Notes under the pieces: generated by a model | What the model saw: only the letters and a program-made list of their open reading frames with translations | Database searches by the model: none | What the model was told of the DNA's origin: nothing | Part shown: piece after piece, positions 4,119-64,000 of the stretch | Position numbering within the stretch: the first letter of the stretch is position 1 | Layout of the letters: every line of letters starts with the position of its first letter | Translations under genes and position numbers: made by a program | Sequence record: MN453779.2 | Length of the DNA: 64,000 nt | Reading direction: 5' to 3' (one strand)

Positions 4119-6935
4119 ATGACAGCTTATGTTGCTTCGCACACCCAGGAGAATAATCCACTTGTCGATTATGCATTTAACACGATGTGGGGTAATCCAG
4201 AATTGGATTCTCAATATCAACTTAAGCTTGCTCGGGTTTCTCCAGCGCTTGGTTATGTGAATAACTTCTTCTATATGGGGAAGTCGTTTACACTACCAAG
4301 TGAAGGTGTGTTTTATCATGTCTTTTCAATGGGTGGTTTAGACCTCGACTACTGGAATATGGGTAGTCGAGGCAATCACTGGTATCCGTTTAATACTTGG
4401 GTGAAAGCTTCCACTATTTCTCATGATCGTGGTGTTGGGTTGGATGTTTATAATAGCAAAGGTAGAATCTTTCCAAGAACTCATACCTATATTTTAAACA
4501 CCTTCGAGGGGAACACTTTTGTAGCATTCCCTATTAATGGTAATTATCCAATTCCTGTTAGTAGTAACATGTATATTCGTTGTTACACGACAGATATTAA
4601 CACTGCGATTATTCCAAGTGATCAACAAGTTAAATGGCGATTTGGTTATTCTGGGGTAGAGTTTGTAACTGGTTCTGATTTAACCAATTTGAAGAATCAT
4701 TACAATGCTTATTTAGCTTATGGTATTGGGAAAGTCACTTTCTTTGTAAATGGTGTTATTACTGATATTAGTAAGTATGTTGGTCGTATTGGTGATCTGT
4801 TAGAAGTTTACTACGATCCAACTATCAAAATGGAAGTAAAGTACCAGTACGGTAGTTTGAATGACTATTACTCTGAGAAAGATAGTAAACGAAAACTATT
4901 AATTTTCCCAGGGTTTACTGACAAACCTCGTAAATACCAGTACTTTGATGATTGTGAGTTCTTCGTAGTTAATCGGTTAACTGGGCTAGGTCTGTATTAT
5001 CATCGTAATAGTCAAGATGCTATTCGTCAGTTAACTCATCAGGATTATGGATTAACTTCTGACTACGTAAGTTTCTTGATTAGTGAACTTATTGGGTTGA
5101 GTAAAGGTAAAGCAACTGAGAATGATTTCGATGTTGTAGTTCGTTACAGAGATACTAAGTGGCAATTTAATCTAGGTCCCAATACTAGTCGTATTAATGA
5201 TCTTTACTTACTGGAAGATCCAGCAGTAATTCTTCAGGCGATGATTGGACCTCATGCTACTGTAAAAGAGTGGACTCCAAGTGAATTGGAGAAAGCTCCT
5301 TGTAACTATGTGCTCAACTCTATTGCACCAAAGATCACCACTGAACGTGTAAGAGACGCTTTAGGTTACAATGGTTGTTCTACAGCTCTGTCTGATTCAC
5401 CTCTGTATATGCCGTTCATTACTCCTGGTGATCCAGCCTTTGAAGATATCTTCCCAACACCACCTTATACTTCTGGGTTAGGATATCGTATTCCTGCTAG
5501 TTATGTTGAATCATCTACGGCTTATGAGTATAACAAAGATGGATTATATATCCGTAAGAGTTCTATTCGTAATAGTGAATGGTTTAAACCAGGCCAGGAT
5601 ACTCACTACGTGGAGTTTGTAGTAGGTCAGGCCAGTACATGGTTAGACTATGAAATTAGCAGGGTAGATGTCCAAGCTAGACCTGGTTATGGATTCCGGG
5701 TATTTAAAGCAGGCTGGATTATTGATGATAATCCAGAGCCCACACCAGATACTAGTTTGTTTGCTAATGAAGTAGCAATTACTTCTGACGGTAATGACAT
5801 CTATCCTAGTCCCACAGAGTTAAGCATTGGTGGTGATTTAACATTAGCTAATCCAGTTGGACCTGTGACCACAGGTAGACCAGATGGCAAGTGGGTCGAC
5901 ATTACTGACAGTAATGAATACCAAGTTATCGATGGTGTTATTAAATGGAAGTTCGATACCAACAACCACGTTGGATTAGTTATCTTTGATACCATTCATT
6001 TGTATAACGAATTTGATCTAACACATGTTGATAATTCCGTTTACTTTGGTATTACGCACCAGTGGGAAATTGGTGGTGTTCTAGCTACTATGGAACCTGG
6101 TCAACTTGATGTCTGGTGTAATGGACATCCATTGATTGAGAACGTGGACTATAAGGTAGAATATCCTTATGTATACATAATCTCTAAAATGTGGTTAGAT
6201 CAATCTGGTACAAACAAGTTTGCTTATCGTGGACGAGGACTCAGTGCTGGTGGTTTGATCCCATCTAGTGAACTGGGTTTTGTAATGGATGGAGTGATTG
6301 GGCACAACGGTCGTTATAATCTTCGCATAGATCGTCCCACAAAGACTATTATTAACGGTAGACTTTGGATCACCTCTGCAATTGATCAAGCTGAAGATAT
6401 TCATCACGGAACTAATGTAGCTGTATTGAACGGATTCCCCTATGAGGTAAAACACATCTACTGTGATAATAAGTATGTTGAACAGTGTGATTTACATTGG
6501 GGATTTAAAGAATCCAGAGAGCTTGATAAGAAGGTTAGTGACTACTTGACAGAACACGTTAAGTACAAACCTAAAGCTCCTGTTAATTATCCGTATCTTC
6601 AGGAAGACCGTTATAGACTCTTTAGTCCATTCTTAAGTCAAATTGTAAATGAACTGATCTTAGGTTTCTTACCGACTCCTACGCCTAGCGATACGCCGAT
6701 TAAATATCCAGACAGTGTAATTGATAATTTAACTCGTCCTTATCAATGGTTGTTGAAGTTTGATCCGATTAAACTTAACATGGATTTGAGATTCTTCTCT
6801 GTTCATCCTTACAGTAATCTTACTCGTCCAACTGTTACTCCTAATCAATTAACAATTATCTCTCGAGTTAACGATTTGTATCTCGATGGTAAGTTGAAGA
6901 TTGAAGGTTTCTTTGAGGTATCGTCTAATGTTTGA
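4119..6935 (+). CDS. Large virion structural protein (phiKZ gp27-like)
   Basis: 938-aa ORF, GGGGT RBS, Y/N/G-rich and beta-rich composition. Assigned by synteny. Confidence 0.5.
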   Translation: MTAYVASHTQENNPLVDYAFNTMWGNPELDSQYQLKLARVSPALGYVNNFFYMGKSFTLPSEGVFYHVFSMGGLDLDYWNMGSRGNHWYPFNTWVKASTISHDRGVGLDVYNSKGRIFPRTHTYILNTFEGNTFVAFPINGNYPIPVSSNMYIRCYTTDINTAIIPSDQQVKWRFGYSGVEFVTGSDLTNLKNHYNAYLAYGIGKVTFFVNGVITDISKYVGRIGDLLEVYYDPTIKMEVKYQYGSLNDYYSEKDSKRKLLIFPGFTDKPRKYQYFDDCEFFVVNRLTGLGLYYHRNSQDAIRQLTHQDYGLTSDYVSFLISELIGLSKGKATENDFDVVVRYRDTKWQFNLGPNTSRINDLYLLEDPAVILQAMIGPHATVKEWTPSELEKAPCNYVLNSIAPKITTERVRDALGYNGCSTALSDSPLYMPFITPGDPAFEDIFPTPPYTSGLGYRIPASYVESSTAYEYNKDGLYIRKSSIRNSEWFKPGQDTHYVEFVVGQASTWLDYEISRVDVQARPGYGFRVFKAGWIIDDNPEPTPDTSLFANEVAITSDGNDIYPSPTELSIGGDLTLANPVGPVTTGRPDGKWVDITDSNEYQVIDGVIKWKFDTNNHVGLVIFDTIHLYNEFDLTHVDNSVYFGITHQWEIGGVLATMEPGQLDVWCNGHPLIENVDYKVEYPYVYIISKMWLDQSGTNKFAYRGRGLSAGGLIPSSELGFVMDGVIGHNGRYNLRIDRPTKTIINGRLWITSAIDQAEDIHHGTNVAVLNGFPYEVKHIYCDNKYVEQCDLHWGFKESRELDKKVSDYLTEHVKYKPKAPVNYPYLQEDRYRLFSPFLSQIVNELILGFLPTPTPSDTPIKYPDSVIDNLTRPYQWLLKFDPIKLNMDLRFFSVHPYSNLTRPTVTPNQLTIISRVNDLYLDGKLKIEGFFEVSSNV

Positions 6936-8667
6936 TGGACAACCAACGATTCCAGATACAAATGGAGTGTTCCCAGGGAACACTCCTAGTCGTCCTAATG
7001 GAGACGAACTAAAACGTGTTTGGTATATTGAACAGATTTATGATCCTGATGTTCACCCTGTTGAGGATATGACTAAGTACGTTGTTCCTTACGAAGGTGA
7101 GATCGTAATTGATCGTCCTGCTCACAAGTTTTACGAAGTTTCTCATGTAGATCGTTACGGAACTTGGAAAAGTACCTTTGTACCTTGGTATCCAATTCCA
7201 GAAACTAGCGAGAATGATTACTCTTTGTTCCCTAAGCACGAATACGGATTCCTACAGGGTGAATTAGCACTCTGTATCGATTACAGTGTTCGTCCTCCGG
7301 TTGCTAGGGTAGATGCTAACGCCACTGCTCCTGATGCTGCTTATGCGTTGCTGTACGAAGGTTCGGTGATTGGCGAAGCTGGCAAGATTATCTCTGCCAG
7401 ATATTCGGGTTCTGATCTGGTCGATAACCATATCTCTGTTTCTCCTGTTGTTATTGACAACTTGGAGAATAAGACCATCATGGGTGCTGATAGTTTCTCA
7501 GTTCAACTGAATGAAGCCGCGATGCCTAATGGTAAACGCTGTACTTTGGTTTATTACGATGTAGCAGGTAGACCCATTCCACCTACCTATTCAGTAGCAG
7601 TACAACACAGCGCATATCTGAAAGATCATCAACTGGGTCAACGTTACGTTAAATCCATTGAGTTGGTTTCCCCTTGGTTTACTAACTCTACACTTCCTAG
7701 TACCTTGTTTATTCCTATTAACTTGGCATTAAAAGCTGTAGAGTTTAGAGCGAAAGTTCATTATTCTGATGGTAGTTACGAAGAACATCCAGTAAACAGT
7801 TTTAATGGTGAATCTGGATTTACTTTGTCAGGGTTGGAACAATATAAACCAACTACCCCAGGTCAATCCACTAATGCGCTGGTATTGTCTTATGCTTACA
7901 AAAATAATGAGCAAGCTTATATCGCGCAGCCGGGTTCTCCCAAGCATACGTCAAACCGTTATACGATTGTTGCAACGACTGCTCAGGGCAGTTATAGTCC
8001 TCGTATTTACAGTTACCCTTATTGGGATCCTGCTGCTGGGTGGAAGCTTCGTCATTGGCTTACTGATCTGGATCGGCGGTATTGTCGAGATGTTACACAA
8101 CTGGTCACTCTGAATGAAGCAAGCCCCGCATTTGACGGTCGTAAATACGGTGAAGAACAAAACCTTATTTTCAACCTGAATATGCGGGATGTTTCTGCCA
8201 GTTATGAACCTTGGTCATTTGTCCAACATACTACTATCACATTGTACTCTGATGGAACAGTAGAGGGTCGTAAGTGGGATGTTCGACACTCATACGGGAA
8301 ACCTGCTTTCAATGCCTTGTCTGTTGAGTACATTGAACAAGTAGGTGGGAGCCAAATTGCTAAATTTGCTGGGATGGCTTCTTTGGAAGATTTCCTTAAC
8401 AAAGCGTATTATGGGTTTGACCCTATCTATGATCCGAGAACTGAAAGTAAAGCTTTAGTTCCCACTCATTTTGATTTGGTGAAGAACAATAATACCGCTA
8501 GAACCGGTATACCAATTGGGGAGTTTAACAACATTCCTGTAGGTGACTTGTCATTTAGTAATGGTGAAGGTGTCTATCTTCGTTGGACTCGTCGTGAAGC
8601 TTCAGGTAACGAACTACAGTTAGGTGTATCCGCTGGTGTCTGTAAGAAAGTAGTTGTTTACTCTTAA
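6928..8667 (+). CDS. Virion structural protein (phiKZ gp26-like)
   Basis: Start reassigned to the ATG at 6928, behind a GAGGT RBS and overlapping the upstream stop. About 579 aa. Assigned by synteny. Confidence 0.5.
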   Translation: MFDGQPTIPDTNGVFPGNTPSRPNGDELKRVWYIEQIYDPDVHPVEDMTKYVVPYEGEIVIDRPAHKFYEVSHVDRYGTWKSTFVPWYPIPETSENDYSLFPKHEYGFLQGELALCIDYSVRPPVARVDANATAPDAAYALLYEGSVIGEAGKIISARYSGSDLVDNHISVSPVVIDNLENKTIMGADSFSVQLNEAAMPNGKRCTLVYYDVAGRPIPPTYSVAVQHSAYLKDHQLGQRYVKSIELVSPWFTNSTLPSTLFIPINLALKAVEFRAKVHYSDGSYEEHPVNSFNGESGFTLSGLEQYKPTTPGQSTNALVLSYAYKNNEQAYIAQPGSPKHTSNRYTIVATTAQGSYSPRIYSYPYWDPAAGWKLRHWLTDLDRRYCRDVTQLVTLNEASPAFDGRKYGEEQNLIFNLNMRDVSASYEPWSFVQHTTITLYSDGTVEGRKWDVRHSYGKPAFNALSVEYIEQVGGSQIAKFAGMASLEDFLNKAYYGFDPIYDPRTESKALVPTHFDLVKNNNTARTGIPIGEFNNIPVGDLSFSNGEGVYLRWTRREASGNELQLGVSAGVCKKVVVYS

Positions 8668-21624: not shown

Positions 21625-21875
21625 ATGAGAGAAAATACTTTCTATTAAGCTTTGAGTTTCAACAAGATGTGATAGAGCATGAAGCAACAGAAGAGTTTAT
21701 TCAAACATGGATAACAATGTGGTCCGGCGACTGGAACTCGAATCCAGAAGACTTACGTCGCCACATTTTAAGTATGGTCCCTTTACCGATTTGGGCACCG
21801 CCGGAATATATAGATCGGATCTTTCTCTTTGTTGTCATGAACACCAATAGGTCTCATATTGTTTATTTACCTTAG
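21625..21875 (+). pseudogene. Small ORF with an apparent 1-nt frameshift after codon 3
   Basis: GAGGGG RBS and ATG at 21625 stop after 7 codons. One extra A in the A4 run at 21632-21635 would join it to the 21669-21875 frame. Confidence 0.4.
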
Positions 21876-22420: not shown

Positions 22421-22924
22421 CTATAGCTTGAGCGTGTATCCCATATTCCGACAAACTTTTCTGTACTCTTCAAGATTAAATACTCCATTACAATCCGTGT
22501 ATTTAATCAAAGTGTTCATAGGTAATCCGGTGATTTCACAAGCTATTCTACATGTGGGATAACGTTTACCGTTAACATTCCATCCGGTCTTTTTGCGTAG
22601 CTTTTTTAGAGCGGCGCGATGTTTTTCTTCTGAGTCCCACCAGTTATCTTTACTTGTCCCTTTCATAAGGTGTTCTGGATTACAACGCCTTCTATTATGA
22701 CATGTATGTCTAACCACTTCTTCTTTTGTTATTTCACCATTGAAGACTTTATATACAAACCTATGAACAGACTCATTCTTACCAAGAAACCCATTTGGAT
22801 GAAATTGACCATAACCACCGCTAAGAGATCTGGTCCATTCCCAACATTTGTTTTCTTGATTAATAAAAATATGTGGTTTGATTTTATCTTCAAAAATAGT
22901 AAACAGTTCTTGATTAATCGTCAT
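22421..22924 (-). CDS. HNH endonuclease inside the tRNA cluster
   Basis: CWEW...GYG...VHRF.Y...VVRHTCHNRRRCNPEHL motif. Start placed at ATG 22924 behind a GGTGA RBS. Confidence 0.88.
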   Translation of the reverse strand: MTINQELFTIFEDKIKPHIFINQENKCWEWTRSLSGGYGQFHPNGFLGKNESVHRFVYKVFNGEITKEEVVRHTCHNRRRCNPEHLMKGTSKDNWWDSEEKHRAALKKLRKKTGWNVNGKRYPTCRIACEITGLPMNTLIKYTDCNGVFNLEEYRKVCRNMGYTLKL

Positions 22925-22944
22925 TTTATCACCATTAATCAAAT

Positions 22945-23391: not shown

Positions 23392-24067
23392 AAACAAAAA
23401 CGCATGGAAGCATTTTTGAACGGCTCGTTACTTTTTAATTAACTCTTTATAAAAACTAATTAAAAAGTAAGTGTTGATTTAACACCTACAAAAATAAACC
23501 CTACAGGAAAAAGAACAAAACAATGAAAAGAAAACCAACGCACGAAGAACCCCGAGTTCTTCCTTAAGAACACTTTGTTAAATATCCTTAAGGAAGAGAA
23601 GATGTAGGGATCATCTTCTCTGGAATAACAAGCACCTAAACGTACATGAAAGCAAGGGAATACTTTCCTAATAGTAACTCTTTTAGAATTAACATTAGGA
23701 AAGCCACAGATATCTAGGAGGAGGAAAATATCTGTGACTTTTTATTACGGAGGCTTTTCAAATGCAAGAAGCTAACTGTTAGCGGCAGTCTGACTTCTTT
23801 AAGTTCACTTAATAAAAATAAACTTAAAGAAATAAGGTAACAAATAATATTAGATGCTACCTTAAACCAAAGCGGTATAAAAACAATCAAGGATCCGATC
23901 ATGAAAAACACTACTGGTAACTACCGAACGTTTTTCTTTCACATATAATAAATAACTTGTTGTAAATAAATAAAAATATTTAAGTCCCATAATTTTTCAG
24001 ATAGATATTATTTTAATGATAAACTAGTGAGGTTTAATTTTAACCTTAAGTGTAGAGAGGGTAGTTT

Positions 24068-24481
24068 ATGAGACTATTTGGTTGTGAAGAAAAGGTAAGT
24101 GGAAGAGATCGACAAGTTTTCGTGTTTAAGGATTTTGTTATTAAACTTCCTAGAACTGAAAGCTGGTTGTCATTTGTGAGAGGACTATGTTCCAACCTTA
24201 AGGAAATTGAAACTGTTACCAATTACGATGGGTTGTTTCCAGATCAGATCATGGAGATAAAGTGGTCGGGATTTTTCGGGATCGTACTTGTAGTTAAACG
24301 CTACCAGGAAGTTAGGGATGTGTCTGAACATAGATGCAGGTTCTTTAACAGACTGGAACGAATTTACGGTGCTGATACATCTGATTGGAAATTCATCTGG
24401 GATGAAGATAACAAAGTCTTTAATTACGGCTGGGACAAATACGGACGGCTCGTAAAATTAGATATTGGGGTTTATTACTGA
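24068..24481 (+). CDS. Minimal protein-kinase-like protein (type A)
   Basis: G.DR.V...FVIKLP, NLKE, D.K..N.G and KLDIG motifs in 137 aa. Confidence 0.65.
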   Translation: MRLFGCEEKVSGRDRQVFVFKDFVIKLPRTESWLSFVRGLCSNLKEIETVTNYDGLFPDQIMEIKWSGFFGIVLVVKRYQEVRDVSEHRCRFFNRLERIYGADTSDWKFIWDEDNKVFNYGWDKYGRLVKLDIGVYY

Positions 24482-24882
24482 TGAAGCTCTTTACACTCCC
24501 AATAAATCCTGGGACTACAAGAAATATTTTAATCTTTAAACATTTTGTAATAAAACTTCCAAGAACGTGTAGTTGGGATCTTTGGAAACCCAATCTTAGT
24601 GATTTTAAAGCTAGTCTTGCAGTAAATAGATTGGAGCGCAAGAACATCAAACAAAATCAGGATGTTCCCGGAATCCCTAAGTTATATTTTTCAGACCCCT
24701 TTGGTTTTATCATCATTATGAAACGTTATCGAAAGTTTGACTCGGTAGCTCAGTACGTAAAACTTTATGATGAACTCATTAAAACATCGAGGTTGGAAAA
24801 AGAGTTCTGGGAAGATGATGCCTGTATCAGTAATTTTGGTTTAGACGAAAACAATCAAATTGTAAAAATTGACTTAGGTTAG
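24481..24882 (+). CDS. Minimal protein-kinase-like protein (type B)
   Basis: GTTR.I...FVIKLP, NRLE, DDACISNFG and terminal KIDLG motifs. TGATG coupling to the upstream gene. Confidence 0.65.
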   Translation: MKLFTLPINPGTTRNILIFKHFVIKLPRTCSWDLWKPNLSDFKASLAVNRLERKNIKQNQDVPGIPKLYFSDPFGFIIIMKRYRKFDSVAQYVKLYDELIKTSRLEKEFWEDDACISNFGLDENNQIVKIDLG

Positions 24883-24891
24883 GAGTGGTAT

Positions 24892-25506
24892 ATGAACTTT
24901 GATCAAATTAAGAAACGTGTTCAGCTTAATTTGCGTAATGCGTTTTCTGTAACTCATGTTAAACAGGAGTTGGTTAATCAAAAACTCATTAAAGACATGA
25001 GAGTACTGTGTGAATTTCGGGTCGAGTGCATTAGTTTTGTACTTAACAACGAGGAGAAACACTTTATCTTTTATATCGATAAACTCGATGGTCTTTATTT
25101 CACTAGGAGTAAAGAAGGGATGTTGGACGAACTTACTTCTAGAATACGTTATTACGATTTTACCTTTGAACTCACCGATGATCCTGAGTACCGTAATGAC
25201 ATCACCGGTAAACTTCTGGAAAGTATTATCGGTCGTGAAGCTCGTCAGCAGATGCACAACACTTTCAACTTCTGGAAGGAAGAAGCACAAGCCCGAGGCA
25301 ATAACTTCTTTTACACACTAGGTTACAAAGTAACTGGGTACAATAAACGCACCATGTCGTTTACAGCTGACTTTGAACTTAACGTTCGAAAAGAGGATGA
25401 AGACGAATTTATCAGTTATCGTGGTCAGTTTGTCGATGGTTCTGCTGTTAACATTAAAACAGACTGGAATGGTGTTTATGTGACACTTTCCGATATCTTC
25501 TATTAA
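24892..25506 (+). CDS. Hypothetical protein
   Basis: 204 aa, AGGAG RBS. Confidence 0.7.
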   Translation: MNFDQIKKRVQLNLRNAFSVTHVKQELVNQKLIKDMRVLCEFRVECISFVLNNEEKHFIFYIDKLDGLYFTRSKEGMLDELTSRIRYYDFTFELTDDPEYRNDITGKLLESIIGREARQQMHNTFNFWKEEAQARGNNFFYTLGYKVTGYNKRTMSFTADFELNVRKEDEDEFISYRGQFVDGSAVNIKTDWNGVYVTLSDIFY

Positions 25507-25575
25507 TTATGTGATAGACATCCAGGGAGGTAACTCCCTGTTATTTTTACACGTTAATAGTCGGGGATTGGTCTA

Positions 25576-26259
25576 ATGGGAACGATAGGTTTGAAAATTA
25601 AAATGTTGTTTGTTTATGTTATTTTGAAGATTATGTCCAAAAACATAGAAGTAATCAACGAGAAAGTTAAAGAGTTGGTTATCTGGGCTAATGGTAAAAA
25701 TAACGACAATGTTCTTTTGGGCGGGATTGGAAGTGTGGAAGTTCGCTTGGTGAAAGAGGGTAGAGGATGGTGGATTCATATTAAAGGTCTAGGTGTACCT
25801 TTGATCAAGGATCGACTCACCAACGGTTTCTATGCTTTCAATAAGAAGACCGTGGGACGTCTGGAGGCTCTTTTCATTACCTGGGCTGGGGTAGACTTCA
25901 AACACGACATCGATCACATCTGTGACTATATCAAGGGATTTGACTACATGTGTCAAGTTCCTGAGTTTGGCATCTTTGATCGTATTCGTGAAACCAAGAA
26001 AGAAGTTCACTTTACCCCTCACGAAGACTTTGGCAATTACATTGATGTGAGAGGTAATGTTGCTCGTAAGGTCTATGGACAATATTCCCTGGAATTGTGT
26101 TTTAAGATCAATTCAAAGTTTTGCCGAGGGTTTGTGGGTGAGTTAGTTATTGATGAAATCAAACCTATCGATATTACTACCGTATTCACTCAGAAGGAAT
26201 TTAACAAGTCCCTGGGTTGGTTGGTATCGGATTACGTTCAAAACGTCGTAAAGTGTTAA
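25576..26259 (+). CDS. Hypothetical protein
   Basis: 227-aa ORF co-oriented with the early block. Start uncertain. Confidence 0.65.
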   Translation: MGTIGLKIKMLFVYVILKIMSKNIEVINEKVKELVIWANGKNNDNVLLGGIGSVEVRLVKEGRGWWIHIKGLGVPLIKDRLTNGFYAFNKKTVGRLEALFITWAGVDFKHDIDHICDYIKGFDYMCQVPEFGIFDRIRETKKEVHFTPHEDFGNYIDVRGNVARKVYGQYSLELCFKINSKFCRGFVGELVIDEIKPIDITTVFTQKEFNKSLGWLVSDYVQNVVKC

Positions 26260-26327
26260 ATAGACATGCTGAGAAGGAGAGATCCTTCTCAGTGTTATTA
26301 TTTTTGCTGTCCAATGGAGTGTAGGAA

Positions 26328-26990
26328 ATGAAAACAGTATTTGATCGCGCTGATAAAGCAGTATTGAATATGGCACGGATCGTCAACCTCTTTGCTTGTG
26401 ATAAAGAGATTCTGGAAGCCATAGAAATTGAGTTGATAGGTTCTCGTGGTAAGAAAATCAATATTCTTACCTGCGGTAATGTAAAACTGCAAGCAGTGAT
26501 AGAAGACATGAATGTTTATCTGGGTTTTGGAGATGTTAGGTTCAAAGAAGAGTGTCTCCCTACCCTTCCTGGATGTTCTTTTAAAATCAACTTGTTGGTC
26601 AAGAACCACGACGAGATTTCTAATGATCTTCGTAAACGGTTTATCATTACCTATGAAAGTCGTTACAGAACCGCACTGCAACGCTTTATGAACAATTTGA
26701 AAGCTGGTTCCATGCAAAGGTCAGGATTCTGGTCAAAGCTGTTTAAACGGGGTCGGGTAAGCTTTAAGTCTGCTAACCCGGTTATCAATGAAATGTTCAC
26801 TTTGAAAGAAGTGGTCCCGTTTAACGGATACGATTTAACATTGAAGTTTGATATCCTGGGCGAGATTAAGGGAATAGGAACTTACTACAACAATTACAAC
26901 CCTGATATTTACATGTCAGTTTCTAAAGATACTCCTGAGAAACTCACTGATGGTGTTATCGGTAACATCATGAGCAAATACATCCTGTAA
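26328..26990 (+). CDS. Hypothetical protein
   Basis: 220 aa, AGGA RBS. Confidence 0.7.
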   Translation: MKTVFDRADKAVLNMARIVNLFACDKEILEAIEIELIGSRGKKINILTCGNVKLQAVIEDMNVYLGFGDVRFKEECLPTLPGCSFKINLLVKNHDEISNDLRKRFIITYESRYRTALQRFMNNLKAGSMQRSGFWSKLFKRGRVSFKSANPVINEMFTLKEVVPFNGYDLTLKFDILGEIKGIGTYYNNYNPDIYMSVSKDTPEKLTDGVIGNIMSKYIL

Positions 26991-27009
26991 TCTAGGAAGG
27001 AAAATAACT

Positions 27010-27768
27010 ATGAAAACTTTTAATCCATGTGAGAGAATGTCCTCACTCCATTCCGCCATGGATGTCAACTATGCACTTATTCAAGATTTCCGTGAACTGG
27101 GGTATTCTCAGTTCTTTCTTCCACTGTTGGAGTATAACAACTATGCTCGTAAACATCTGAAAGAAACTATTGCTAGTTTAAATGTTAGAGGAGAGTTTGA
27201 ACTTAAAATTGGAGTAGTCTGTAAGAACCAGATTAGTTTGGTTCGTAATAAACAACACAAATACTCTCTTCATGTTTCTGATGTTTACACTCAGGATAAA
27301 GAGATTATTTCTTTGTCTGGTATTCGTGATCTGTTTAACGAAGCTCAGGTCAGTATGATCATGACTAGACTGAATGCTTGTAAGTATCCGGAAGATCTCT
27401 ATTACAAACACTTTGAGATTATTCGTTCTAACATTGCTAAGTCTTTGACAGTGGGAAAGGTTAGCTTTGTTGATAAGCTTCTCAAACGTCCTAAGGAGAT
27501 TTCCTTTGACACCGGCGGATACACAGAAGGAAAATGGGTAGAAGCTCCGTATACAGCTTACTATGGGCTTTGGGGAAATGTTGAGGTTGAAGGACGGTGT
27601 AACTATTACGTTGGTATGATTAATCTTAGTTTGTTCCCTGAGATCCATACACCGGTTCACATCAAGCATTTTAAAGTTCTGTTCAATAAAGATCTTAAAA
27701 GTCTAGGGACTTACTTGGCTAAAGATATTGCGAGTCAGGTGTGTCAAGCGCTAGGTCCTAAATTCTAG
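27010..27768 (+). CDS. Hypothetical protein
   Basis: 252 aa, AGGAAGGA RBS. Confidence 0.7.
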   Translation: MKTFNPCERMSSLHSAMDVNYALIQDFRELGYSQFFLPLLEYNNYARKHLKETIASLNVRGEFELKIGVVCKNQISLVRNKQHKYSLHVSDVYTQDKEIISLSGIRDLFNEAQVSMIMTRLNACKYPEDLYYKHFEIIRSNIAKSLTVGKVSFVDKLLKRPKEISFDTGGYTEGKWVEAPYTAYYGLWGNVEVEGRCNYYVGMINLSLFPEIHTPVHIKHFKVLFNKDLKSLGTYLAKDIASQVCQALGPKF

Positions 27769-27829
27769 ATGTTTCATTTATTACAGGGTTGATTTTTAAT
27801 TAAACTAAATTTAGATAAGGAAAAATACC

Positions 27830-28459
27830 ATGTTTAAAAATGTTAATGAAATTGTTCAATATAAAGAACAGATTAAACAAGTCATTCACGACATAACCTC
27901 ACCGAAAGCTGAAAGTAAAGAGGTCGATATAAATATTAAAGAGATACAAGAAGTATTAAGAATTTCTTTTATCGACCTTAGAGGAGATCATAAGGTAGTG
28001 AAATTTGATTTGATTAAAAATATTTTTGATTCTGGGGAACAACAACTGGCGTCTATTAAAAACATTAGCACATTTACTGAATTAGATTTCTTTGCTAATG
28101 GTGAGGTGATGAAAGAAAGCGTTGACGCTTGTTACGAACTATTCTTTATTACATTTGTTACTCGTTTAGTGAGCAACTCGGTTTATGTTGTACATGACGT
28201 TTTCAAAGGAAATTTACTTCTTGATTTCTTAAAATCAGGACAGCTTAAAGGGTTAGATATAAAGAACACGACTAGAACAGTAAAGTACACAGTCTTTGAT
28301 AAACATGAAAATGTCGTTTGGGAAACTTCAATGAGTAATAGAACAGGATGTAAGCATTTCAACTTGGACAGTGGCTATTTTAATGGTGTTTTGATTTCTG
28401 CAATGACAATGGCTTTGATTTACAATGAAGATAACTGGGATGTAAACATTTCAAGTTAA
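27830..28459 (+). CDS. Hypothetical protein
   Basis: 209 aa, AAGGA RBS. Confidence 0.7.
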   Translation: MFKNVNEIVQYKEQIKQVIHDITSPKAESKEVDINIKEIQEVLRISFIDLRGDHKVVKFDLIKNIFDSGEQQLASIKNISTFTELDFFANGEVMKESVDACYELFFITFVTRLVSNSVYVVHDVFKGNLLLDFLKSGQLKGLDIKNTTRTVKYTVFDKHENVVWETSMSNRTGCKHFNLDSGYFNGVLISAMTMALIYNEDNWDVNISS

Positions 28460-28663
28460 TTGGGGATCTGAATTGGTTAATAAATAGGAATTGGTATTTT
28501 CAGTAATGGGTAAGGCGATTTATTTGTCTTACCCATTTATTTTAACATTACATTTTTATGTAAAAAGTATATTATATGTAATTGGTTTACTTTTCTTGAT
28601 TTTTGAACGTCATTTAACTTGGTTTCTTCACTCCTTTTTAAATCGGATTTATTTTCGATTTAA

Positions 28664-28719
28664 GGGGGGTTTGGGGGGTCCAGGTCAAAGTGGGGTCCAA
28701 AGGTCAAGTGCGGGTCCAA
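28664..28719. repeat. G-rich imperfect tandem repeat (GGGTCCA..GGTCAA.GT units)
   Basis: Units at 28675-28691, 28692-28709 and 28710-28719. G6, G6, G4 and G3 runs inside an AT-rich intergenic gap. Confidence 0.7.
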
Positions 28720-28955
28720 TTACCTAGTTCGGGTGAGTGGGCGGCTGGAAGCCTATTATACTTAATTAGTAAAATGAGTATGATGGTAAGATAAGAATGA
28801 ACGTAGTGAATGCCTTATCCATCAATACGAATGAACTGTAACTAGGTAAGAAGAAAAGTAATACATTTTAAAGATACTACAAACAACTTACTCTGGGTGA
28901 ATAACCTGGGGTAAGGGAATATGTTTGTTCATTTAAATAAACTATTAAAGAGGAT

Positions 28956-29300
28956 ATGAGAGTGAATATTGAAAAAGAAGTTGAACTGTTAATAAAGACT
29001 TTTAAAAATATATATTTTAATATTGATAAAGAATCATTAGTAATTTCCATAAAACCTATCAACATTAAACAACTTGGGCATATCTCAGTTAGTAAAGAAA
29101 ATGAACAACAACTTGTAGAACTATTAGATAATCAAGTTAATTTAAGATGGGGTTATGGTTTCTGCCAAGAGTCTCCCATTATTGAGATTTATTTAGGTGA
29201 TGGGAAAAGGGGTTGTTGTTTTGATAGTATACAGACATTATCTCCAACCACTGAAGGGCTAGTAGAACTAATAGTGGAGTTATTTGAAGATCTAACTTAG
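28956..29300 (+). CDS. Hypothetical protein
   Basis: 114 aa, GAGGA RBS. Confidence 0.6.
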   Translation: MRVNIEKEVELLIKTFKNIYFNIDKESLVISIKPINIKQLGHISVSKENEQQLVELLDNQVNLRWGYGFCQESPIIEIYLGDGKRGCCFDSIQTLSPTTEGLVELIVELFEDLT

Positions 29301-29482
29301 AGAACAGTTTATGCTAAGTTCATCAGGATTGATAATACTTACTAGTTTATTGATAAAGGCTGTAACTAGTAAACTAGAGTTTACACCTGGAACGTTACAA
29401 GATTCAGATTTCTACGCTTTAATTAAATCAATTGGTGAAAATCTAGTTTATTAAACTTTTACATTAAATCTAGGAGAAGAAA

Positions 29483-29989
29483 ATGAAACTAACAATGCGT
29501 GAAGTTAATCTCATGATTAACAATAACATCTATCTCTTTGGGAAATTCCTGGATAAGGAGATAGATCGAGTAGAGATCAAGTTACCGGATAACGAAGAAG
29601 TGGGAGTTGATCGCACTATTGTTTTCCAACATGGCACTGAAGAGAATGGGGTGATACAGTTTATTACTGGTGATAAGGATCCGATCACAAAGAAGATCAA
29701 GATTAAAGTACGGGAAGAGGAACTCCACGTAAAACTTGCATCTAAACTGGAGCTGGCAGAGGCATTAATTCAGCGAGAACTGGGGGACATTATGCTGGAA
29801 TCCAGTTTCAATGAAATGGTGGATGATCCGGAAGTGAATAAGCAGGTGTGTCCATTTATTTCCAATAAGAGAATTGATGAGTACGTTCTCACATCCACAC
29901 AGGAACTGGATGGTAGATTGTCAATAATTTTGTTGAGTCTTTATATTCAAGGTTCGTACTGGATTGATCGACCCATGGAAGTAAAATAA
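29483..29989 (+). CDS. Hypothetical protein
   Basis: 168 aa, TCTAGGAGAAGAAAATG leader. Confidence 0.7.
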   Translation: MKLTMREVNLMINNNIYLFGKFLDKEIDRVEIKLPDNEEVGVDRTIVFQHGTEENGVIQFITGDKDPITKKIKIKVREEELHVKLASKLELAEALIQRELGDIMLESSFNEMVDDPEVNKQVCPFISNKRIDEYVLTSTQELDGRLSIILLSLYIQGSYWIDRPMEVK

Positions 29990-30073
29990 ATAATAACTAA
30001 CGATAACTTACTCTGGGCCTTAACCCAGAGTAAGTTCTGTTTTTCATATTACTAATAAGTCTAGGAGAAGAAA

Positions 30074-30433
30074 ATGAAATTACGTATGGATGTATTGAAA
30101 AGTAACATTGGTTCTAAAAGTGTAGAACTTGTTAAGTTTATTCGTAAAGAGATTGAAGAGGTCAGTTTTGCTATAACTGTTGATATGGATTACCGGATGG
30201 TAATGAAGCCAGCTTACGGATCACTTTACTCCACTTCCGTAATTGATACAGTTACCAAAGAAGTAAAGGATGAGGTAAACCATAGACAACGTTTCTTTGG
30301 TCATCTGGAAAGATTACACGGTAACGATATACCTTGTTGGAATTTTGTTTGGGATGAAGACAACAAGGTATTTAACTATGGCTGGGATAAATACGGTAGA
30401 TTAGTAAAAATAGATTTAGGGATTTTTCACTAA
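30074..30433 (+). CDS. Chimeric protein: 29483-like N-terminus fused to a kinase-like C-terminal half
   Basis: C-terminal WDEDNKVFNYGWDKYGRLVK is identical to 24068-24481. N-terminal MKL.M...KF..KEI resembles 29483. Confidence 0.65.
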   Translation: MKLRMDVLKSNIGSKSVELVKFIRKEIEEVSFAITVDMDYRMVMKPAYGSLYSTSVIDTVTKEVKDEVNHRQRFFGHLERLHGNDIPCWNFVWDEDNKVFNYGWDKYGRLVKIDLGIFH

Positions 30434-30798
30434 TGTTTATTAATCGTAAAGGATGTACTAGAACGGTTTTGGTTTTTAATGACTTTGTGATTAAAATTCC
30501 AACCTTAAACTCTTGGGAGCTTTTTCTTCATGGTCTGCTGGCAAATATTACTGAAGAAAGGTTTAGTAGGGAGTTAGATAATCGATTAGGTCTAGTCCCC
30601 ATGTATTATGGTAGTAAGCTGGGGATTTATGTTGTTAGTAAAAGAGCCAGAGAAGTAAAGCACCGTGGGTTGTTCTGGGTAGAATTGGGAAGATTAGCGG
30701 CCTTATCAGATCTTCATCCTGACTTTTGGTATCACGATGCAAAACCCGAAAACTTTGGATATATTAATAATCAACTTGTAAAAATTGACCTAGGTTAG
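30433..30798 (+). CDS. Minimal protein-kinase-like protein (type B)
   Basis: GCTRTV...FVIKIP, NITE, YHDAKPENFG and terminal KIDLG motifs in 121 aa. Confidence 0.75.
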   Translation: MFINRKGCTRTVLVFNDFVIKIPTLNSWELFLHGLLANITEERFSRELDNRLGLVPMYYGSKLGIYVVSKRAREVKHRGLFWVELGRLAALSDLHPDFWYHDAKPENFGYINNQLVKIDLG

Positions 30799-30833
30799 GA
30801 GTAGCATATGAACTTTGATCAAATTAAGAAACG
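30769..30833 (+). repeat. 65-bp direct repeat of 24853-24917
   Basis: 61 of 65 positions identical by manual comparison. Spans the kinase stop, an RBS and a truncated copy of the 24892 gene start. Confidence 0.85.
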
Positions 30834-30935
30834 CGGACTAAATACATAAGACAATTTAATTTAGGTTCTATAATTTTTCACATAGATATTATTTCTATGT
30901 AATGTTACAATATGTATTTCAAAGGAGTGTAGAAA

Positions 30936-36273: not shown

Positions 36274-36396
36274 CGCTCTGTATTGCGTTTAAATCAATTT
36301 CTTTATTAAATACGTACGATTCAATACTTTAGAGAAAAGAATCGTTTACAAGAGCTCTCAGCTCGTTTTAATCAATATGTTATCTAGGAGAAGAAA

Positions 36397-37347
36397 ATGG
36401 ATCGTTGCTTCAATATCTATGGTGCTGGTGGTGCTGGTATTAACATTCTGAACCAACTACTCAAAGAGTCCAAGTCCCAGCAGTTTATCAAACAAGTGGT
36501 TGGTCTAGATACTTCTGACGCCAACCCGGCTATCGATGGACTGTTTGAAATCGAACGCCTGGGTGATACTCGTGGCTCTGGTTCTGATAAGAGTGCCAAC
36601 ATCTCCCGTTATCCGGACTTCGTAAAACAAGTTCTGGCTAAACACCAACCTAACAGTATTAACATCGTGGTGTTCTCAGCCGCTGGTGGTTCAGGTTCTG
36701 GTATTGGGCCTTTCCTGGTACGCGCCATGTTGGAACGTGATATCCCAGTTCTGTCGGTAGTTATTGGTGATACAACTTCTATTAAAGAGTTTGATAACAC
36801 CATCTCCACCCTGCGTTCTCTGAATGCTCAGACTAAACTTGGTTGCCCGGTGTTGTTCGCTTATCGTGAAAACCAACTTGGCCGAACCCAAGGTGAAGTT
36901 AACCGTAACGTGCTGGAAGTAATTAACAATGCCATCATGATGTTCAATCTACAAAACGAACGTATTGATTACGCTGATGTTAAGAACTTTTTCTTCTTTA
37001 CCAATGTGGTTAAAGCAGATCCGATTCTTACTCAAGTATCGTTCTGTAACGATGAGAATGTGAAAGACTACAAGCGCACCCCAGTTGCTTGTATCTCTCT
37101 GTTCAATGACATTGATCAAATCAAAGCTCCGTTCGATAATCTCCTGTATCGCAAAGCCGGTTTGTTCGGACCTGAAACAGAAGGTCTGATTAACGCAGCT
37201 CACGCTCTGCTTGATCACGGTTCTACTCTTAATGAGTTGGAAGTAATGATGAAGCAACAAGAGACCAAACAGGCTGAACTCTCTGGTAAATACAAAGTAC
37301 AAAAAGATCTGAGCCAAGGTTCTGATGACCACGGTATGTTCTGTTAA
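36397..37347 (+). CDS. phuZ: PhuZ phage tubulin
   Basis: GAGGAGINI, LDTS, RGSGSD and tubulin signature AAGGSGSGIG in 316 aa. Confidence 0.93.
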   Translation: MDRCFNIYGAGGAGINILNQLLKESKSQQFIKQVVGLDTSDANPAIDGLFEIERLGDTRGSGSDKSANISRYPDFVKQVLAKHQPNSINIVVFSAAGGSGSGIGPFLVRAMLERDIPVLSVVIGDTTSIKEFDNTISTLRSLNAQTKLGCPVLFAYRENQLGRTQGEVNRNVLEVINNAIMMFNLQNERIDYADVKNFFFFTNVVKADPILTQVSFCNDENVKDYKRTPVACISLFNDIDQIKAPFDNLLYRKAGLFGPETEGLINAAHALLDHGSTLNELEVMMKQQETKQAELSGKYKVQKDLSQGSDDHGMFC

Positions 37348-46888: not shown

Positions 46889-49800
46889 ATGTCAACTTTA
46901 GCGAATGTACTTGAGCAGTATCAAATACAACATCTTCTTCCAACCACTCTATTTGATAAAATTATTGAAGAGTCAGGTTATACACCAGAAGGTGATGACG
47001 AAAGCTTTTACCAGCCTCTTTATCCAGACATTGAAGATTTTAATTATCGGCATGATACTACTACAGTTCATCCGATCTATCTGAATGATTTCGATTTTAA
47101 TATAGAAGAAGATCGAGAAAAGATTACTGCTCTACTACGTACCGAATATGAAGGAAACAATTTCGATACAGTCGCGAGCTGCACTTGTAAGAAACATCGG
47201 ACTAATGCGTACCTTGGTACAAGTTTCGTTTGTGACAGTTGTGGAGATCCTGTCACTAAACCACTTGGCGAGAAAATCGAAACCAAAGTCTGGCTTCGCA
47301 CTCCTGCTAATGTGTCAGGTTTTATTAATCCTACTATTGCGGAAGTGTTCTTTCGTAAACTTAACACCAAAACTCCTAAGGTAAATTTGATGGAGTATTG
47401 GATTAACAAAGAGTTTAGAAATGAAAAGCGTTTTAGAGACCCAAGTCATAGTGCGTTTAAAATAGCTTGTAAACTAGAAGCTTTCCGTTTGTCGCTCAAT
47501 ATCGAATTTGGATATAACGAGTTCGTTGACAATATGGATTTGATTATCAGATCAGCTATTGAACACGACACTAATGGTGTTCTGGATCTTACTGAAAAGA
47601 ACCGTGAACATTATGCGATGTTCTGGGAAAAATTCAAATCAAGAGCTGTAGCTCAACATCTCCCTTTGCCTAACAAGGTAACCTCTATTGTCGAGTCTGA
47701 CCAACGAGATAAATATGTTAATAAGGAGAAGAGTGATCTTGAAAAGATCTTTTACACCATTGCTGATATGTATCCAGCTTATGACTATCGTTCTACTGAG
47801 AACGCAGAGATCATGGGGAAGATCTTTACTAAACTCAAAAACATGATGTTGGATGTAACTGAATCTATCCTCTTCAAGAAGAAAGGGATGATTCGATATC
47901 ACGCTGGTGCTGGTAAGCTACCAATGACTGGTCGTTCTATTATCACAGGTGAATCTGGTGTTTGTCGCTCAGACACTATCATCGTTCCCTGGTTGTACGG
48001 AATAACTTGTTTGGATAAACACCTAACTAACTGGCTGTATCGGAAAGGTTATACCCCGCTGAAAGTAAAGGAGATTATACGTTCTGCTGCTAACTTTAAA
48101 CATCCTGTTGTAGAGGAGTTCTTTAACTGGGTAGAAAGTAATCGATACGCCATTGCAACGTGCGGTCGAAATCCTTCTATTCAGTATTTGTCAGCACGTG
48201 GTTTCTTTGTACAGTTTAACCGCGATGTAGAAGATAAATCCATCCGGATTCCGATCACTACAGTTAAGGAATTTAATGCCGATCGAAATGTATTTAGCAT
48301 ACATGTGGGAAAATAACTTAAACTATTTTCTCCAGTTAAATACACTCAGTCCCCCTAGGGTGAAAGTCCTAGTGAGGTACCTTTTGAATTGCTGGAAAGT
48401 CCACAAAAGTTACTTACCTAAGCTTAATTAGAAATGATTAAGTTAGTGGTGTCGAAAGACAGAAACAACAAGTAACCTGTCCTACGCTAAGAAATAATGC
48501 TAAGGGATACTAACAAGGGATAATCAGCCTCCGAGGATCTAAGTATATTCGTGATGAATAGATAGGATTCAGGTTCAACGACTGTCCCGTGGCTGGGAGT
48601 AGGGAAATCAGATTTCCTGAAGTATTAGGCACCTAACCGTGTAAAGACGTAGGTGATGGTATAGTCTGCTCCTCTAGTAATGTAGAGGCGGGTGTCTTAG
48701 CGCACCGGTGTTATTATGATAGCCAAAATGGCGAACGGTAATAACACGGACATAAGGTTCGACGGTAAACTTTTGCTGTCATTAAACCCTTTCAATTGCT
48801 GGAAACCCCTTAGAGCTTAATCAACTAAAGCGGAATTGGAAACAATAAACGTAAATGTTTGAAAATGATTAAGATTGGGCAATCAGCAGCGAAGCTTCTA
48901 AATACATTTGAGATGAATGGATACGAAGAACGTTCAACGACTACGTTCCCAGAAGCCTGGGATGATGAGGGCGCTTTAAAGCGAAGATATAGTCTCTACC
49001 GGTATGAAAGTATCGGATGGAAATCCCTGACCGGAATTCCACGTGATCTAGCGAATCACGAAGAGTCCTAAAAAGACGGAGAACAATAATGTTGTTAATA
49101 CCTGAATCCGATGGGTTCTTTGTTACTGAAACTGGTCGAGTATACGACAAAGACGGCAAAGAACGAAATTACTACACCAACGGAGACGGGTATATTACCG
49201 CCTCGATCTCTATTGGTGGTAAGTGGCAAACATTTGGGGTACAGCGGTTGGTCATGTTAGCCTATGAACCGATTGATAATCCAGATGACTACACGGTCAA
49301 TCATATTGACCTTGATAAAACCAATAACAACAAACCAAATTTAGAATGGCTGACAACAAAGTGGAACAATATCCATTCTGCTATTTTTAACAGTAAAGGT
49401 AAACGCCCTGTTGTCAGATGTTTGAATGGTGATGAAGAAATGTTCATCAAAGATGTGATGACGCTTCCCACAATTCTTGGTGTCGATATCCAGCAAATAT
49501 GGTTTGCAATTAAGAACTCAACCCAGATAAATGGATGGTCCATTTCACCGATCCCTTATGACGATAAAGAAATTATCCGATTATTGAACAGTTCCATTGG
49601 AACTGTTGATGGACCAGTGAGACCAGTTAGATGTTTAGACATCGAAACTGGAATTTGGAAAAATTACAAGAGTATGAAAGAAATGGCTAATGAATTTGGT
49701 GTTGGTATAACACACATCAGACATCGCTTAGCTACCTTTGAACGTCCTCGTATATTTCTCCAACGTTACATTATTCTGGATGATGGAGTTTCAGATGAGT

Positions 49801-57051: not shown

Positions 57052-57177
57052 GAGTAACTTTTAAAACATTTAAAGAGAGAAGGCTTTAAGCCTTCTCTCT
57101 ATTATATCTATTTTTACCGTCCTATATTTTTTCAGATAGATATTATTTAAGTGTTATTCTAGGGGAGTGTTTAAAAA

Positions 57178-62268: not shown

Positions 62269-62358
62269 GACAAAAGTTTCCTTTTATTAATTTTTTACAA
62301 GCCCTATAATATTTCAGACCGATATTATTAGAATGTAATTCTAGGGAGATATTTAAAA

Positions 62359-64000
62359 ATGAAAGACAAGAAACCTAAAAACCAACTTACCCATAGAACA
62401 AATGGTCTAGCGGTCGGGCTGAACGCATGTAAAGTCTCTTCATCACCTGCTAGATTATACATGCTTTCGAAAAATCTCGGCAAAGCGGCGGTAGTCTGGC
62501 ATCCGACAAATAGGAAGTTTAGCGCTGGCGATGAAGTCGAGTATGGGAAGACTGCTCGAAAAGTAGAAGCAGAGTCTGATGTGGAAGTTGAGGCTATTTT
62601 CTTTCCACGTAATATCCTTAACACCACCGAGCCTAATCTTTGGGGTAAAGTAAACGTTATAGTTCGTAATCTAGAAACAGGAATCTATGACGTGATTGAA
62701 CTGGAAAAGTTCAATACTCAAAACATGGATTTGGGATTCGAGTACAAATACGATGATGATCTACTTCGTAGTATCAAACCTGGTAGTCAATATCGTAAAG
62801 GGACTGTGTTTGGACAATCAGCTCGTATTTCTGAGAGTAATGAATGGTGTCCAGGTATTGAAACTAAAGTAGCTGCTATGAGCCACGTCTATACAGAAGA
62901 AGATGCTGTTCTGATCTTTGAAAGTTATGCACGTAAGGTTGGTGTTACTTTTAGTCGTAAACATGATTACCAGTGGAACGAAGAAGAGTTTATTCCGCTT
63001 AACTTGTACGGTAGCGCTGATAAACCACAACTCTGTCCACTGTCTGGCGAGCGCGTTCGGGAAGACGGTATTGTAATGGGGTTTCGTCGTAAGGATCCTA
63101 ATGCAGGTATCTCAGGGATGACTAAACGCTCCCTGATGATTCCAGATCCTATTTACGATGTATTGTTCTACTCCAGCCCAAACTGTATTGTAGCTGACAT
63201 CGAAGTTCAAACAGAACGTTACAAGAACCAATCTAATAATCGTAAAGCTGAGAAGCTCACTCAACCTCACACTTTGATCTTGGAAAAGATCGAAGAAGAA
63301 TATAACAACTATTATAACGATATTGTTAAATGGTTCGTTAATAAAGAACGTCAATATGCTGACAATGTTCCTTTGTCAGGGAAACTCTGGAATCTGATCT
63401 TTATGGCACGCGGTGCTATTACAAGGGATTTCAGCACTCCTCACTCTAATGGTAAATTCCATAAGGTAAAACGTAAAATCCACAACATCAATCTAAAGGA
63501 CTGGCGTATTATCGTTACTCTTAAGGAAGATGTAGAAGGTAAGGTACGTTTCAAGAATACTGGTATGGATGGTAACAAATCCGTTATCATGAAAATCTTA
63601 CCTGACTCTATGGCGCCTGTAGATGAGTATGGTAACAAAGCTGATATGATTGTGGGTAATACACCTGCATTTCGTCGTCAAACTTTGGGGTCGTTGATCG
63701 AGCTTGACGTGAACTTTGTTAACCAATATGTTTACAGAGAGATTAAACAAGCTTTTGAAAGTAAGGATTACGTGACAGCTTGGGATAAAGCACATCTGTT
63801 CTACAAAACAGTTAATCCCTCATTTGGGGAACTGGTAGAACAACTGAACGCTGAAGAACGAATGGCTCACCTAAGATGGATTATGAAAGATGAGAATGAA
63901 TTCGGTATTCTAGCACCTTCCGGTACTGATGACATAGGGATTAAGATCACTGAACGTTTGGCTGATACTTATGCTCATATCAAACCAACCCCTGTTACTT
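62359..64000 (+). CDS. nvRNAP beta subunit C-terminal part (partial, runs off the window; not in the ORF track)
   Basis: Frame from ATG 62359 reads SSPARLYM near its start and is in frame with KNTGMDGNKSVIMKILP (63541 onward), the RpoB G.K...HGNKGVI equivalent. Early promoter at 62321. Confidence 0.88.
   Translation, partial: MKDKKPKNQLTHRTNGLAVGLNACKVSSSPARLYMLSKNLGKAAVVWHPTNRKFSAGDEVEYGKTARKVEAESDVEVEAIFFPRNILNTTEPNLWGKVNVIVRNLETGIYDVIELEKFNTQNMDLGFEYKYDDDLLRSIKPGSQYRKGTVFGQSARISESNEWCPGIETKVAAMSHVYTEEDAVLIFESYARKVGVTFSRKHDYQWNEEEFIPLNLYGSADKPQLCPLSGERVREDGIVMGFRRKDPNAGISGMTKRSLMIPDPIYDVLFYSSPNCIVADIEVQTERYKNQSNNRKAEKLTQPHTLILEKIEEEYNNYYNDIVKWFVNKERQYADNVPLSGKLWNLIFMARGAITRDFSTPHSNGKFHKVKRKIHNINLKDWRIIVTLKEDVEGKVRFKNTGMDGNKSVIMKILPDSMAPVDEYGNKADMIVGNTPAFRRQTLGSLIELDVNFVNQYVYREIKQAFESKDYVTAWDKAHLFYKTVNPSFGELVEQLNAEERMAHLRWIMKDENEFGILAPSGTDDIGIKITERLADTYAHIKPTPVT

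Follow-up and report, generated by a model that had tools for sequence, protein, structure and literature searches.

RESULTS

Four small genes at two loci of phage PS2

The subject of this work is a group of four small genes in Aeromonas phage PS2 (MN453779.2), a member of the genus Ferozepurvirus with a genome of 240 kb; the window that we analyzed is the whole stretch of 64,000 nucleotides covering bases 1-64000. An earlier note, made from this sequence alone, had singled these genes out as very small kinases that end at the DFG motif and are arranged as coupled A+B pairs. All four are annotated coding sequences with the product name 'hypothetical protein', and all lie on the + strand. At the first locus, A1 (PS2_0017, 24068..24481) encodes an A-type mini-kinase of 137 residues with the full motif set, and B1 (PS2_0018, 24481..24882) a B-type mini-kinase of 133 residues. 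At the second locus, A2 (PS2_0027, 30074..30433) is an open, chimeric reading frame (ORF) of 119 codons, and B2 (PS2_0028, 30433..30798) encodes a canonical-type mini-kinase of 121 residues, again with the full motif set. Both stop/start overlaps described in the note are present, TGATG at 24479-24483 (A1/B1) and TAATG at 30431-30435 (A2/B2), each with an overlap of 1 nt. The four ORFs are paralogues by blastp (E 1e-14 to 4e-28). A1, B1, and B2 match PHROG 4301 (E 5e-18, 1e-13, and 3e-28, respectively), a family with the function label 'unknown' on which our literature search found no paper; A2 gave no match to PHROG 4301.

Reading the translations directly, we confirmed the order of the motifs and the position of the stop codons, which lie 0-3 residues past the equivalent of the DFG motif: B1 and B2 terminate on the DFG-equivalent Gly itself, A1 and A2 three residues further. 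A1, B1, and B2 each have a Gly-rich turn, and all three contain the Lys of a V-I-K motif and the N..E of the next helix. The turn reads G-C-T-R-T-V in B2, an exact fit to the pattern G.TR.V that the note had given for the three ORFs, whereas A1 (G-R-D-R-Q-V) and B1 (G-T-T-R-N-I) depart from it. The catalytic-loop-like motif is D-x-K-x-x-N in A1, A2, and B2 and is followed in the ORFs by K-x-D-[IL]-G. The catalytic loop assigned in the note to A1, B1, and B2 thus holds for A1 and B2, which have its acidic residue, Lys, and Asn, but only in part for B1, in which the Lys is replaced by Cys. B1 also carries an insertion ahead of the alphaC-like helix and retains the Lys, the Glu, and the DFG Asp. 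Compared with its orthologue in phage pAEv1810, A1 shows saturated synonymous sites and a dN of 0.155, and it is under purifying selection.

A phage family with a conserved end

An exhaustive HMMER search with B2 (E<=1e-3, cluster representatives at 50% identity) returned 347 representatives, nearly all of them 110-135 residues long. Of the representatives spanning the entire domain (n=143; median length 124 residues), 121 (85%) end 0-3 residues past the DFG-equivalent Gly and 14 have tails of >10 residues. The end at the DFG equivalent, which the note had seen in the PS2 genes, is therefore conserved across the family, which argues that the short length is a family property and not a local truncation. 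The tails of the longer relatives Kc263 (267 aa), RP12 (209 aa), AH04 (163 aa), P0158, and P0101 had no Pfam match. Two of the longer relatives had faint Pfam matches to ABC1 (E 0.025 and 0.26), and paired Cys-x-x-Cys motifs past the DFG equivalent in two tailed members, P0123 and P0135, suggest a small zinc-ribbon-like appendage. A few relatives are automatically annotated as Ser/Thr kinases (AH04_186, Kc263, and gene 70 of pEa_SNUABM_5).

We next determined residue shares from an alignment of 123 sequences, with columns numbered by B2 residues. Three residues are invariant (123/123 each): K21 on the third strand, E41 on the long helix, and D119 in the DFG equivalent. The beta3 Lys, the alphaC Glu, and the DFG Asp form the classical kinase triad, and the note's assignment of these kinase residues thus extends to the whole alignment. 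The triad is present in A1, B1, and B2; its Lys is missing from A2. Among the other columns, G7 stands in 120/120 and R10 in 121/121 sequences, an acidic residue at position 102 in 123/123 (D 79, E 44), N or S at 107 in 122/123, G109 in 121/123, and K104, Y120, and G121 each in 106/123. Columns 102, the catalytic-loop acid, and 107 covary (D+N 78, E+S 39, mixed 6; n=123) and divide the family into two active-site subtypes, D+N and E+S. This covariation probably reflects compensated change within the active site and would fit selection on active-site geometry.

The family is found in ~100 sequenced phages, among them jumbo, T4-like, N4-like, and small phages, and in several hundred metagenomic clusters; every context that we saw belongs to a phage genome or a phage contig. 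A 13-sequence motif scan found eight viral loci, mostly in phages already represented in the set, and no member in 185,579 cellular genomes, an absence that is valid for the canonical clade only, as a single narrow motif was used.

Predicted fold

Membership in any named or curated kinase family is not supported at the level of sequence. The ORFs had no kinase match in NCBIfam and no match at curated thresholds to the Pkinase, RIO1, APH, Kdo, or ABC1 profiles, and PADLOC gave no match to known anti-phage defense proteins. Sequence searches of the PDB with B2, the four paralogues, and profiles of 13 and 123 sequences returned nothing significant; only the 123-sequence profile had a kinase, TTK, as its top match (E 0.16), in an alignment that keeps the catalytic loop and DFG in register.

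AlphaFold2 modeled B2 with a pLDDT of 96.5 and a pTM of 0.86, and A1 with a pLDDT of 92.8 and a pTM of 0.84. Both models have five strands and a long alphaC-like helix in the order of a kinase N-lobe, followed by an alphaE-like helix, the catalytic loop, two short strands, and the final Asp. The invariant residues fall where a kinase would have them, the Lys on the third strand, the Glu on the long helix, and the Asp past the last strand. In Foldseek searches of the PDB with the B2 model, 48/50 among the matches listed were kinase-like with a probability of ~1, including Lpg2603, Rio2, APH(2''), TTK, CK2, phosphorylase kinase, and PRPK (E 1e-3 to 5e-2; query-normalized TM 0.47-0.65). The top matches of the A1 model were all kinase-like as well, with WbdD the best (E 1.6e-4) and Akt1, MELK, Rio2, AceK, CK2, the kinase domains of NleH1/2, Bud32/PRPK, and PknB among the others. 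Within BFVD, the model of the PS1 orthologue of B1 superimposed on the B2 model with TM 0.91/0.83 and an rmsd of 1.6, and it was followed by numerous small phage proteins (117-235 residues), of which a few carry the name protein kinase. With confident models and matches that are almost exclusively kinases, the kinase-like fold proposed in the note is well supported as a high-confidence prediction. The activation segment and the helical core of the C-lobe (alphaF onward) are absent from the ORFs and from the family, and this is the feature that distinguishes these proteins.

Subtypes and pairing of A- and B-type genes

B2 differs in subtype from B1 and represents the canonical type. Identity to B2 is ~50% for the single-copy genes found in Aeromonas phage 2L372X and in the Asteriusvirus phages of E. 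coli, which include 121Q, PBECO4, and many others; for genes of T4-like (JS10, G4507), N4-like (phi G17, Moonfish), and Erwinia jumbo phages it is 37-43%. The A-type and the B-type are restricted to Aeromonas jumbo phages, the former occurring in 13 distinct phages and the latter in nine of these, never without A. The two genes are adjacent with overlapping stop and start codons in PS1, PS2, AerS_266, and ZPAH34, separated by one gene in LAh10, D3, D6, and D9, and ~2.7 kb apart in reversed order in AhC3_1. An A-type gene stands alone in pAEv1810, from which the B1 orthologue is absent, and in ACP1, AVP1, and CF8. In every B-type copy that we read, Cys, His, or Thr stands in place of the catalytic-loop Lys, whereas the Lys/Glu/Asp triad is kept, a pattern that resembles a kinase with a degraded partner. 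The coupled pairs of the note are thus conserved in 9/13 Aeromonas jumbo phages, with overlapping genes in four, but elsewhere, in ~90 other phage records, the family is present in single copy.

Origin of the second locus

The N-terminal part of A2 is nearly identical to the start of an unrelated protein of 175 residues from the congeneric pAEv1810 (gene 43, pAEv1810_43-like), and its C-terminal part is the A-type catalytic-loop/DFG half, which matches A1 by blastp with E 4e-28. The note had remarked that A2 keeps the catalytic half alone; the N-terminal motifs are indeed absent, and they are absent because A2 is chimeric. A 68-nt direct repeat (93% identity) spans the B1 end plus the PS2_0019 start in one copy and, in the other, the B2 end plus a 13-codon remnant of a duplicated PS2_0019-type gene start (30808..30849, + strand). 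The 3' end of B was therefore duplicated along with the first codons of PS2_0019. Locus 2 evidently arose by recombination of a cassette into another gene; the cassette comprised part of A, a B-position gene, and the beginning of the gene after it. The outcome is a single broken gene, produced by one insertion/fusion event, together with a single remnant of a duplicated gene start. Because A2 has neither the Gly-rich turn nor the beta3 Lys, it cannot bind ATP in the manner of a kinase and is best regarded as a by-product of the recombination; PS2 therefore has three candidate enzymes, not four. The second A+B 'pair' of the note is itself a product of recombination, A2 being a chimera without an N-lobe and B2 being of the other, canonical subtype.

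The block between the two mini-kinase loci is a mosaic among Ferozepurvirus phages, as seen when positions 4903-5631 and 7414-8052 of the pAEv1810 locus (L008) are compared with 27770-28536 and 30800 onward of the window. At the place of the A2-B2 cassette, pAEv1810 has extra genes that include a SAM-dependent methyltransferase gene. An identical 17-nt ribosome-binding/start context on the + strand occurs at 29469-29485, 30060-30076, and 36383-36399, belonging to PS2_0026, A2, and the tubulin-like PS2_0037, respectively.

Gene neighborhood

In T4-like JS10, only 2 nt separate the family gene from the RNA ligase gene rnlB immediately downstream of it (L004 2986-3354); this adjacency is limited to JS10 and its close relative NC-G and may be due to chance. 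The member in G4507 lies beside a tRNA cluster. On metagenomic contigs, family members were found between terminase and portal genes, on one contig beside a portal-type (head-tail connector) gene, and on another beside a lysis amidase gene, a Tad2-like gene, and a gene for a large polyvalent protein. The E+S members of the metagenomic loci L026, L027, L028, L030, and L032 are located in or beside late modules, following the terminase gene, close to portal genes, or following a lysis amidase gene, and not among early-looking small genes. Two A-type genes have a phosphatase gene upstream, a putative Ser/Thr protein phosphatase gene at ~0.1 kb in LAh10 (L023 1-481) and a CYTH-like phosphatase gene at ~1.7 kb in AerS_266 (L021 1-273). 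Overall, the family genes behave as mobile accessory genes amid small phage genes that lack a known function.

Genome setting and candidate expression signals

By megablast, PS1 is 99.9% identical to the window, and AVP1, pAEv1810, and ACP1 are ~88% identical across 61-63% of the region. Because PS2 has tubulin-like and RNA polymerase beta'-like genes (PS2_0037 and the polymerase genes lie at 36397-37347, 46889-48316, and 62359-64000), it is a phiKZ-like jumbo phage, and it is possibly nucleus-forming. The mini-kinase genes belong to an extended series of small genes on the + strand, every one annotated 'hypothetical protein', which starts past a divergent gap adjoining tRNA genes and an HNH endonuclease gene, on the - strand. 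One HNH endonuclease gene lies between the tRNAs (22421-22942), and three more are found nearby at 14209, 42467, and 49089. ARAGORN predicts a tRNA-Leu (anticodon taa) at 21720-21804 on the - strand; the GenBank feature table has tRNA-Met and tRNA-Arg only, and tRNA-Met alone was confirmed in the tRNA stretch by Rfam at the gathering threshold.

The + strand of the window has three copies of a 25-nt intergenic motif, against a chance expectation of 0.00, and a + strand gene follows each of them at a distance of 30-55 nt. The copies lie at 23989..24013, ~55 nt upstream of A1; at 30870..30894, past the end of B2 and 42 nt ahead of PS2_0029; and at 57124-57148, upstream of PS2_0063. This motif may be a phage promoter. 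A weaker fourth site lies at 62311 before an RNA polymerase-like gene, and an 18-nt version of the motif added just one weak site. Between PS2_0026 and A2 we found a strong terminator-like hairpin on the + strand (30005..30036) with a 13-pair stem followed by a T run. A scan for sigma-70-type promoters returned fewer sites than in shuffled sequences and is uninformative on timing.

DISCUSSION

With moderate confidence, we propose that A1, B1, and B2 are genuine genes under selection, that they belong to a widespread, phage-restricted family of mini-kinases, and that each encodes an ATP/Mg2+ phosphotransfer core without a C-lobe. Such a protein would comprise a kinase-like domain from its nucleotide-binding N-lobe through the alphaE-like helix and catalytic loop to the metal-binding DFG-type turn, and nothing beyond. 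ATP and Mg2+ would be held between the Gly-rich turn, the pair of beta3 Lys and alphaC Glu, and the DFG-type Asp, and the gamma-phosphate would be transferred, or at least hydrolyzed, by way of the catalytic-loop acid and the Lys/Asn. Because the activation segment and the alphaF-alphaI platform are missing, the substrate would have to be positioned by something else, either by the target itself, by self-association, or, in the Aeromonas phages, by the A/B pair with its degraded B loop. As mobile accessory genes among small phage genes of this kind, the mini-kinases could plausibly have a role in host takeover or counter-defense. A bolder version, which we offer only tentatively, is that PHROG 4301 is the smallest self-contained kinase-like phosphotransferase (subdomains I-VII in ~120 residues), a C-lobe-free enzyme that would use its target or a degraded paralogue as platform and would rewire or disarm the host.

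Several observations weigh against a phosphotransferase. At the sequence level, neither the four ORFs nor the 123 relatives matched a Pfam kinase family at E<=1, and with a best PDB sequence match of only E 0.16 there is no significant link to kinase families. The kinase-like models are predictions, and the Foldseek scores behind them are modest (E 1e-4 to 5e-2; query-normalized TM 0.45-0.65). Every kinase match returned runs past DFG (targets of 160-565 residues), so that a DFG-terminated domain has no solved counterpart among them, and a domain that ends at this point may be unstable or inactive by itself. The catalytic acid is Glu in ~1/3 of the members, and 14% have no loop Lys, so that a part of the family, with all B-types in it, may be non-catalytic. 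Finally, no conserved partner gene was found: when the neighbors of 15 loci were clustered all-against-all, the mini-kinase alone was shared (at least three loci).

The main rival draws on some of the same observations and regards the proteins as ATP-binding switches, ATPases, or pseudokinases, which would act on a host or phage protein by clamping, sequestering, or remodeling it, with no phosphorylation of a substrate. The strictly invariant residues are indeed those that would bind ATP and Mg, and the catalytic-loop positions vary more; the B-type copies have no loop Lys, and the substrate platform is missing. Rio2 and Bud32/PRPK are among the best fold matches, and COQ8, an atypical kinase-like protein, is reportedly an ATPase (PMC13418538). 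Conservation around the catalytic loop nevertheless exceeds the constraint for mere binding, with an acid at 102 in 123/123 sequences, Lys 104 in 86%, and covariation of 102 with 107. We consider a switch or ATPase possible, though rather improbable.

An obligate A/B hetero-oligomer, in which an active A and a degraded B form the functional enzyme and each shield the face left by the missing C-lobe, is unlikely. The co-occurrence of the two types in nine of 13 Aeromonas jumbo phages, the lack of any B without A, the four overlapping gene pairs, and the loss of the loop Lys with retention of the triad in the B-type copies are what such a complex would lead one to expect. It is harder to reconcile with the four phages that have A alone, with the genes that intervene in LAh10, D3, D6, and D9, with the distant and reversed pair of AhC3_1, and with the single-copy canonical type of ~90 other phage records; the A2/B2 'pair', moreover, is a recombination product. 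Because A occurs alone in four phages and most phages have a single copy, the hetero-oligomers suggested in the note are not a general mechanism.

We regard it as very improbable that the proteins are halves of a split kinase, with the C-lobe encoded by a separate neighboring gene and joining in trans. A gene of ~90 codons does lie directly downstream in three unrelated phages (G4507, 121Q, and phi G17), and the duplication in PS2 took in the 3' end of B together with the beginning of the gene that follows. The three downstream genes, however, belong to three different PHROGs and cannot be aligned, and we rejected them as partner candidates. The 15 loci share the mini-kinase alone, PS2 and AerS_266 have no neighboring gene in common, and the tails of longer relatives are without a Pfam match. 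The proposal that a partner gene supplies the C-lobe found no backing among the neighbors. Least credible of all is that the ORFs are functionless, truncated remnants of a full-length kinase gene: A2 is a true fusion remnant and the ORFs cover only positions 35-169 of the 225 in the PHROG 4301 profile, but for A1, B1, and B2 decay is already contradicted by a stop position kept in 85% of 143 diverse representatives, by invariant key residues, by the saturated synonymous sites of A1 against its dN of 0.155, and by compact, confident models.

If the C-lobe-free mini-kinases are active phosphotransferases, catalysis requires nothing of a kinase past the DFG motif, which would bear on the evolution of the kinase fold and on what the C-lobe is needed for. 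The family would then provide a very small natural module for ATP binding and phosphotransfer, and the A-B pair of the Aeromonas jumbo phages a compact natural kinase-pseudokinase pair. A function would also be assigned to an uncharacterized family that includes genes of E. coli K-12 phages and is amenable to expression and structure description.

Among known systems, the nearest precedent by analogy may be OspG and NleH. Although subdomains VIII-XI are missing from its kinase domain, OspG remains active, and binding of a host protein switches it on (PMC12756638). Like the phage proteins, OspG, NleH1, and NleH2 have kinase domains that are cut down after the DFG region, here in effectors of enteric bacteria. 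The kinase domains of NleH1/2 match the A1 model in Foldseek (E 7e-3 to 1e-2, TM 0.42-0.47), a match of fold only, as neither OspG nor NleH was matched by sequence in the PDB searches. They are also longer, with matched chains of 160-163 residues versus 119-137 for the phage ORFs, and OspG and NleH are secreted effectors, whereas the mini-kinases are phage-encoded and end on the DFG-equivalent Gly or 1-3 residues past it.

RIO kinases and Bud32/PRPK, small atypical kinase-like domains without an activation loop, rank among the best fold matches (Rio2 TM 0.55-0.61, PRPK 0.60-0.63) and are by fold the nearest of the small atypical kinases; at 225-286 residues, however, they are about twice the size of the phage proteins and extend well past DFG, and the family profile had no sequence match to them.

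The note had drawn a parallel to T7 gp0.7, a phage kinase-like enzyme that acts on host processes and defenses (T7K, PHROG 2828; PMC13645617). In T7K, a DPV motif replaces DFG, and the larger domain is followed by a C-terminal shut-off/DNA-binding part (PMC13645617). The four ORFs had no match to PHROG 2828 among PHROG results at E<=1, and the DPV motif is absent: they have D-I-G or D-L-G, with mostly Tyr in the family (106/123; D-[YLI]-G), and nothing after it. A T7K relative, A0A7L7SMK1, which is discussed in PMC13645617, does appear far down the BFVD fold list. Sequence membership in the T7 gp0.7 family is thus not supported, and the likeness may be taken as a functional analogy only.

The top Foldseek matches WbdD, APH(2''), and Lpg2603 (E 1.6e-4, 9e-3, and 1.3e-3, respectively) are far longer than the mini-kinases, at 283-501 residues, with an identity of 14-20%. 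These matches show that a kinase-like core serves non-protein substrates too.

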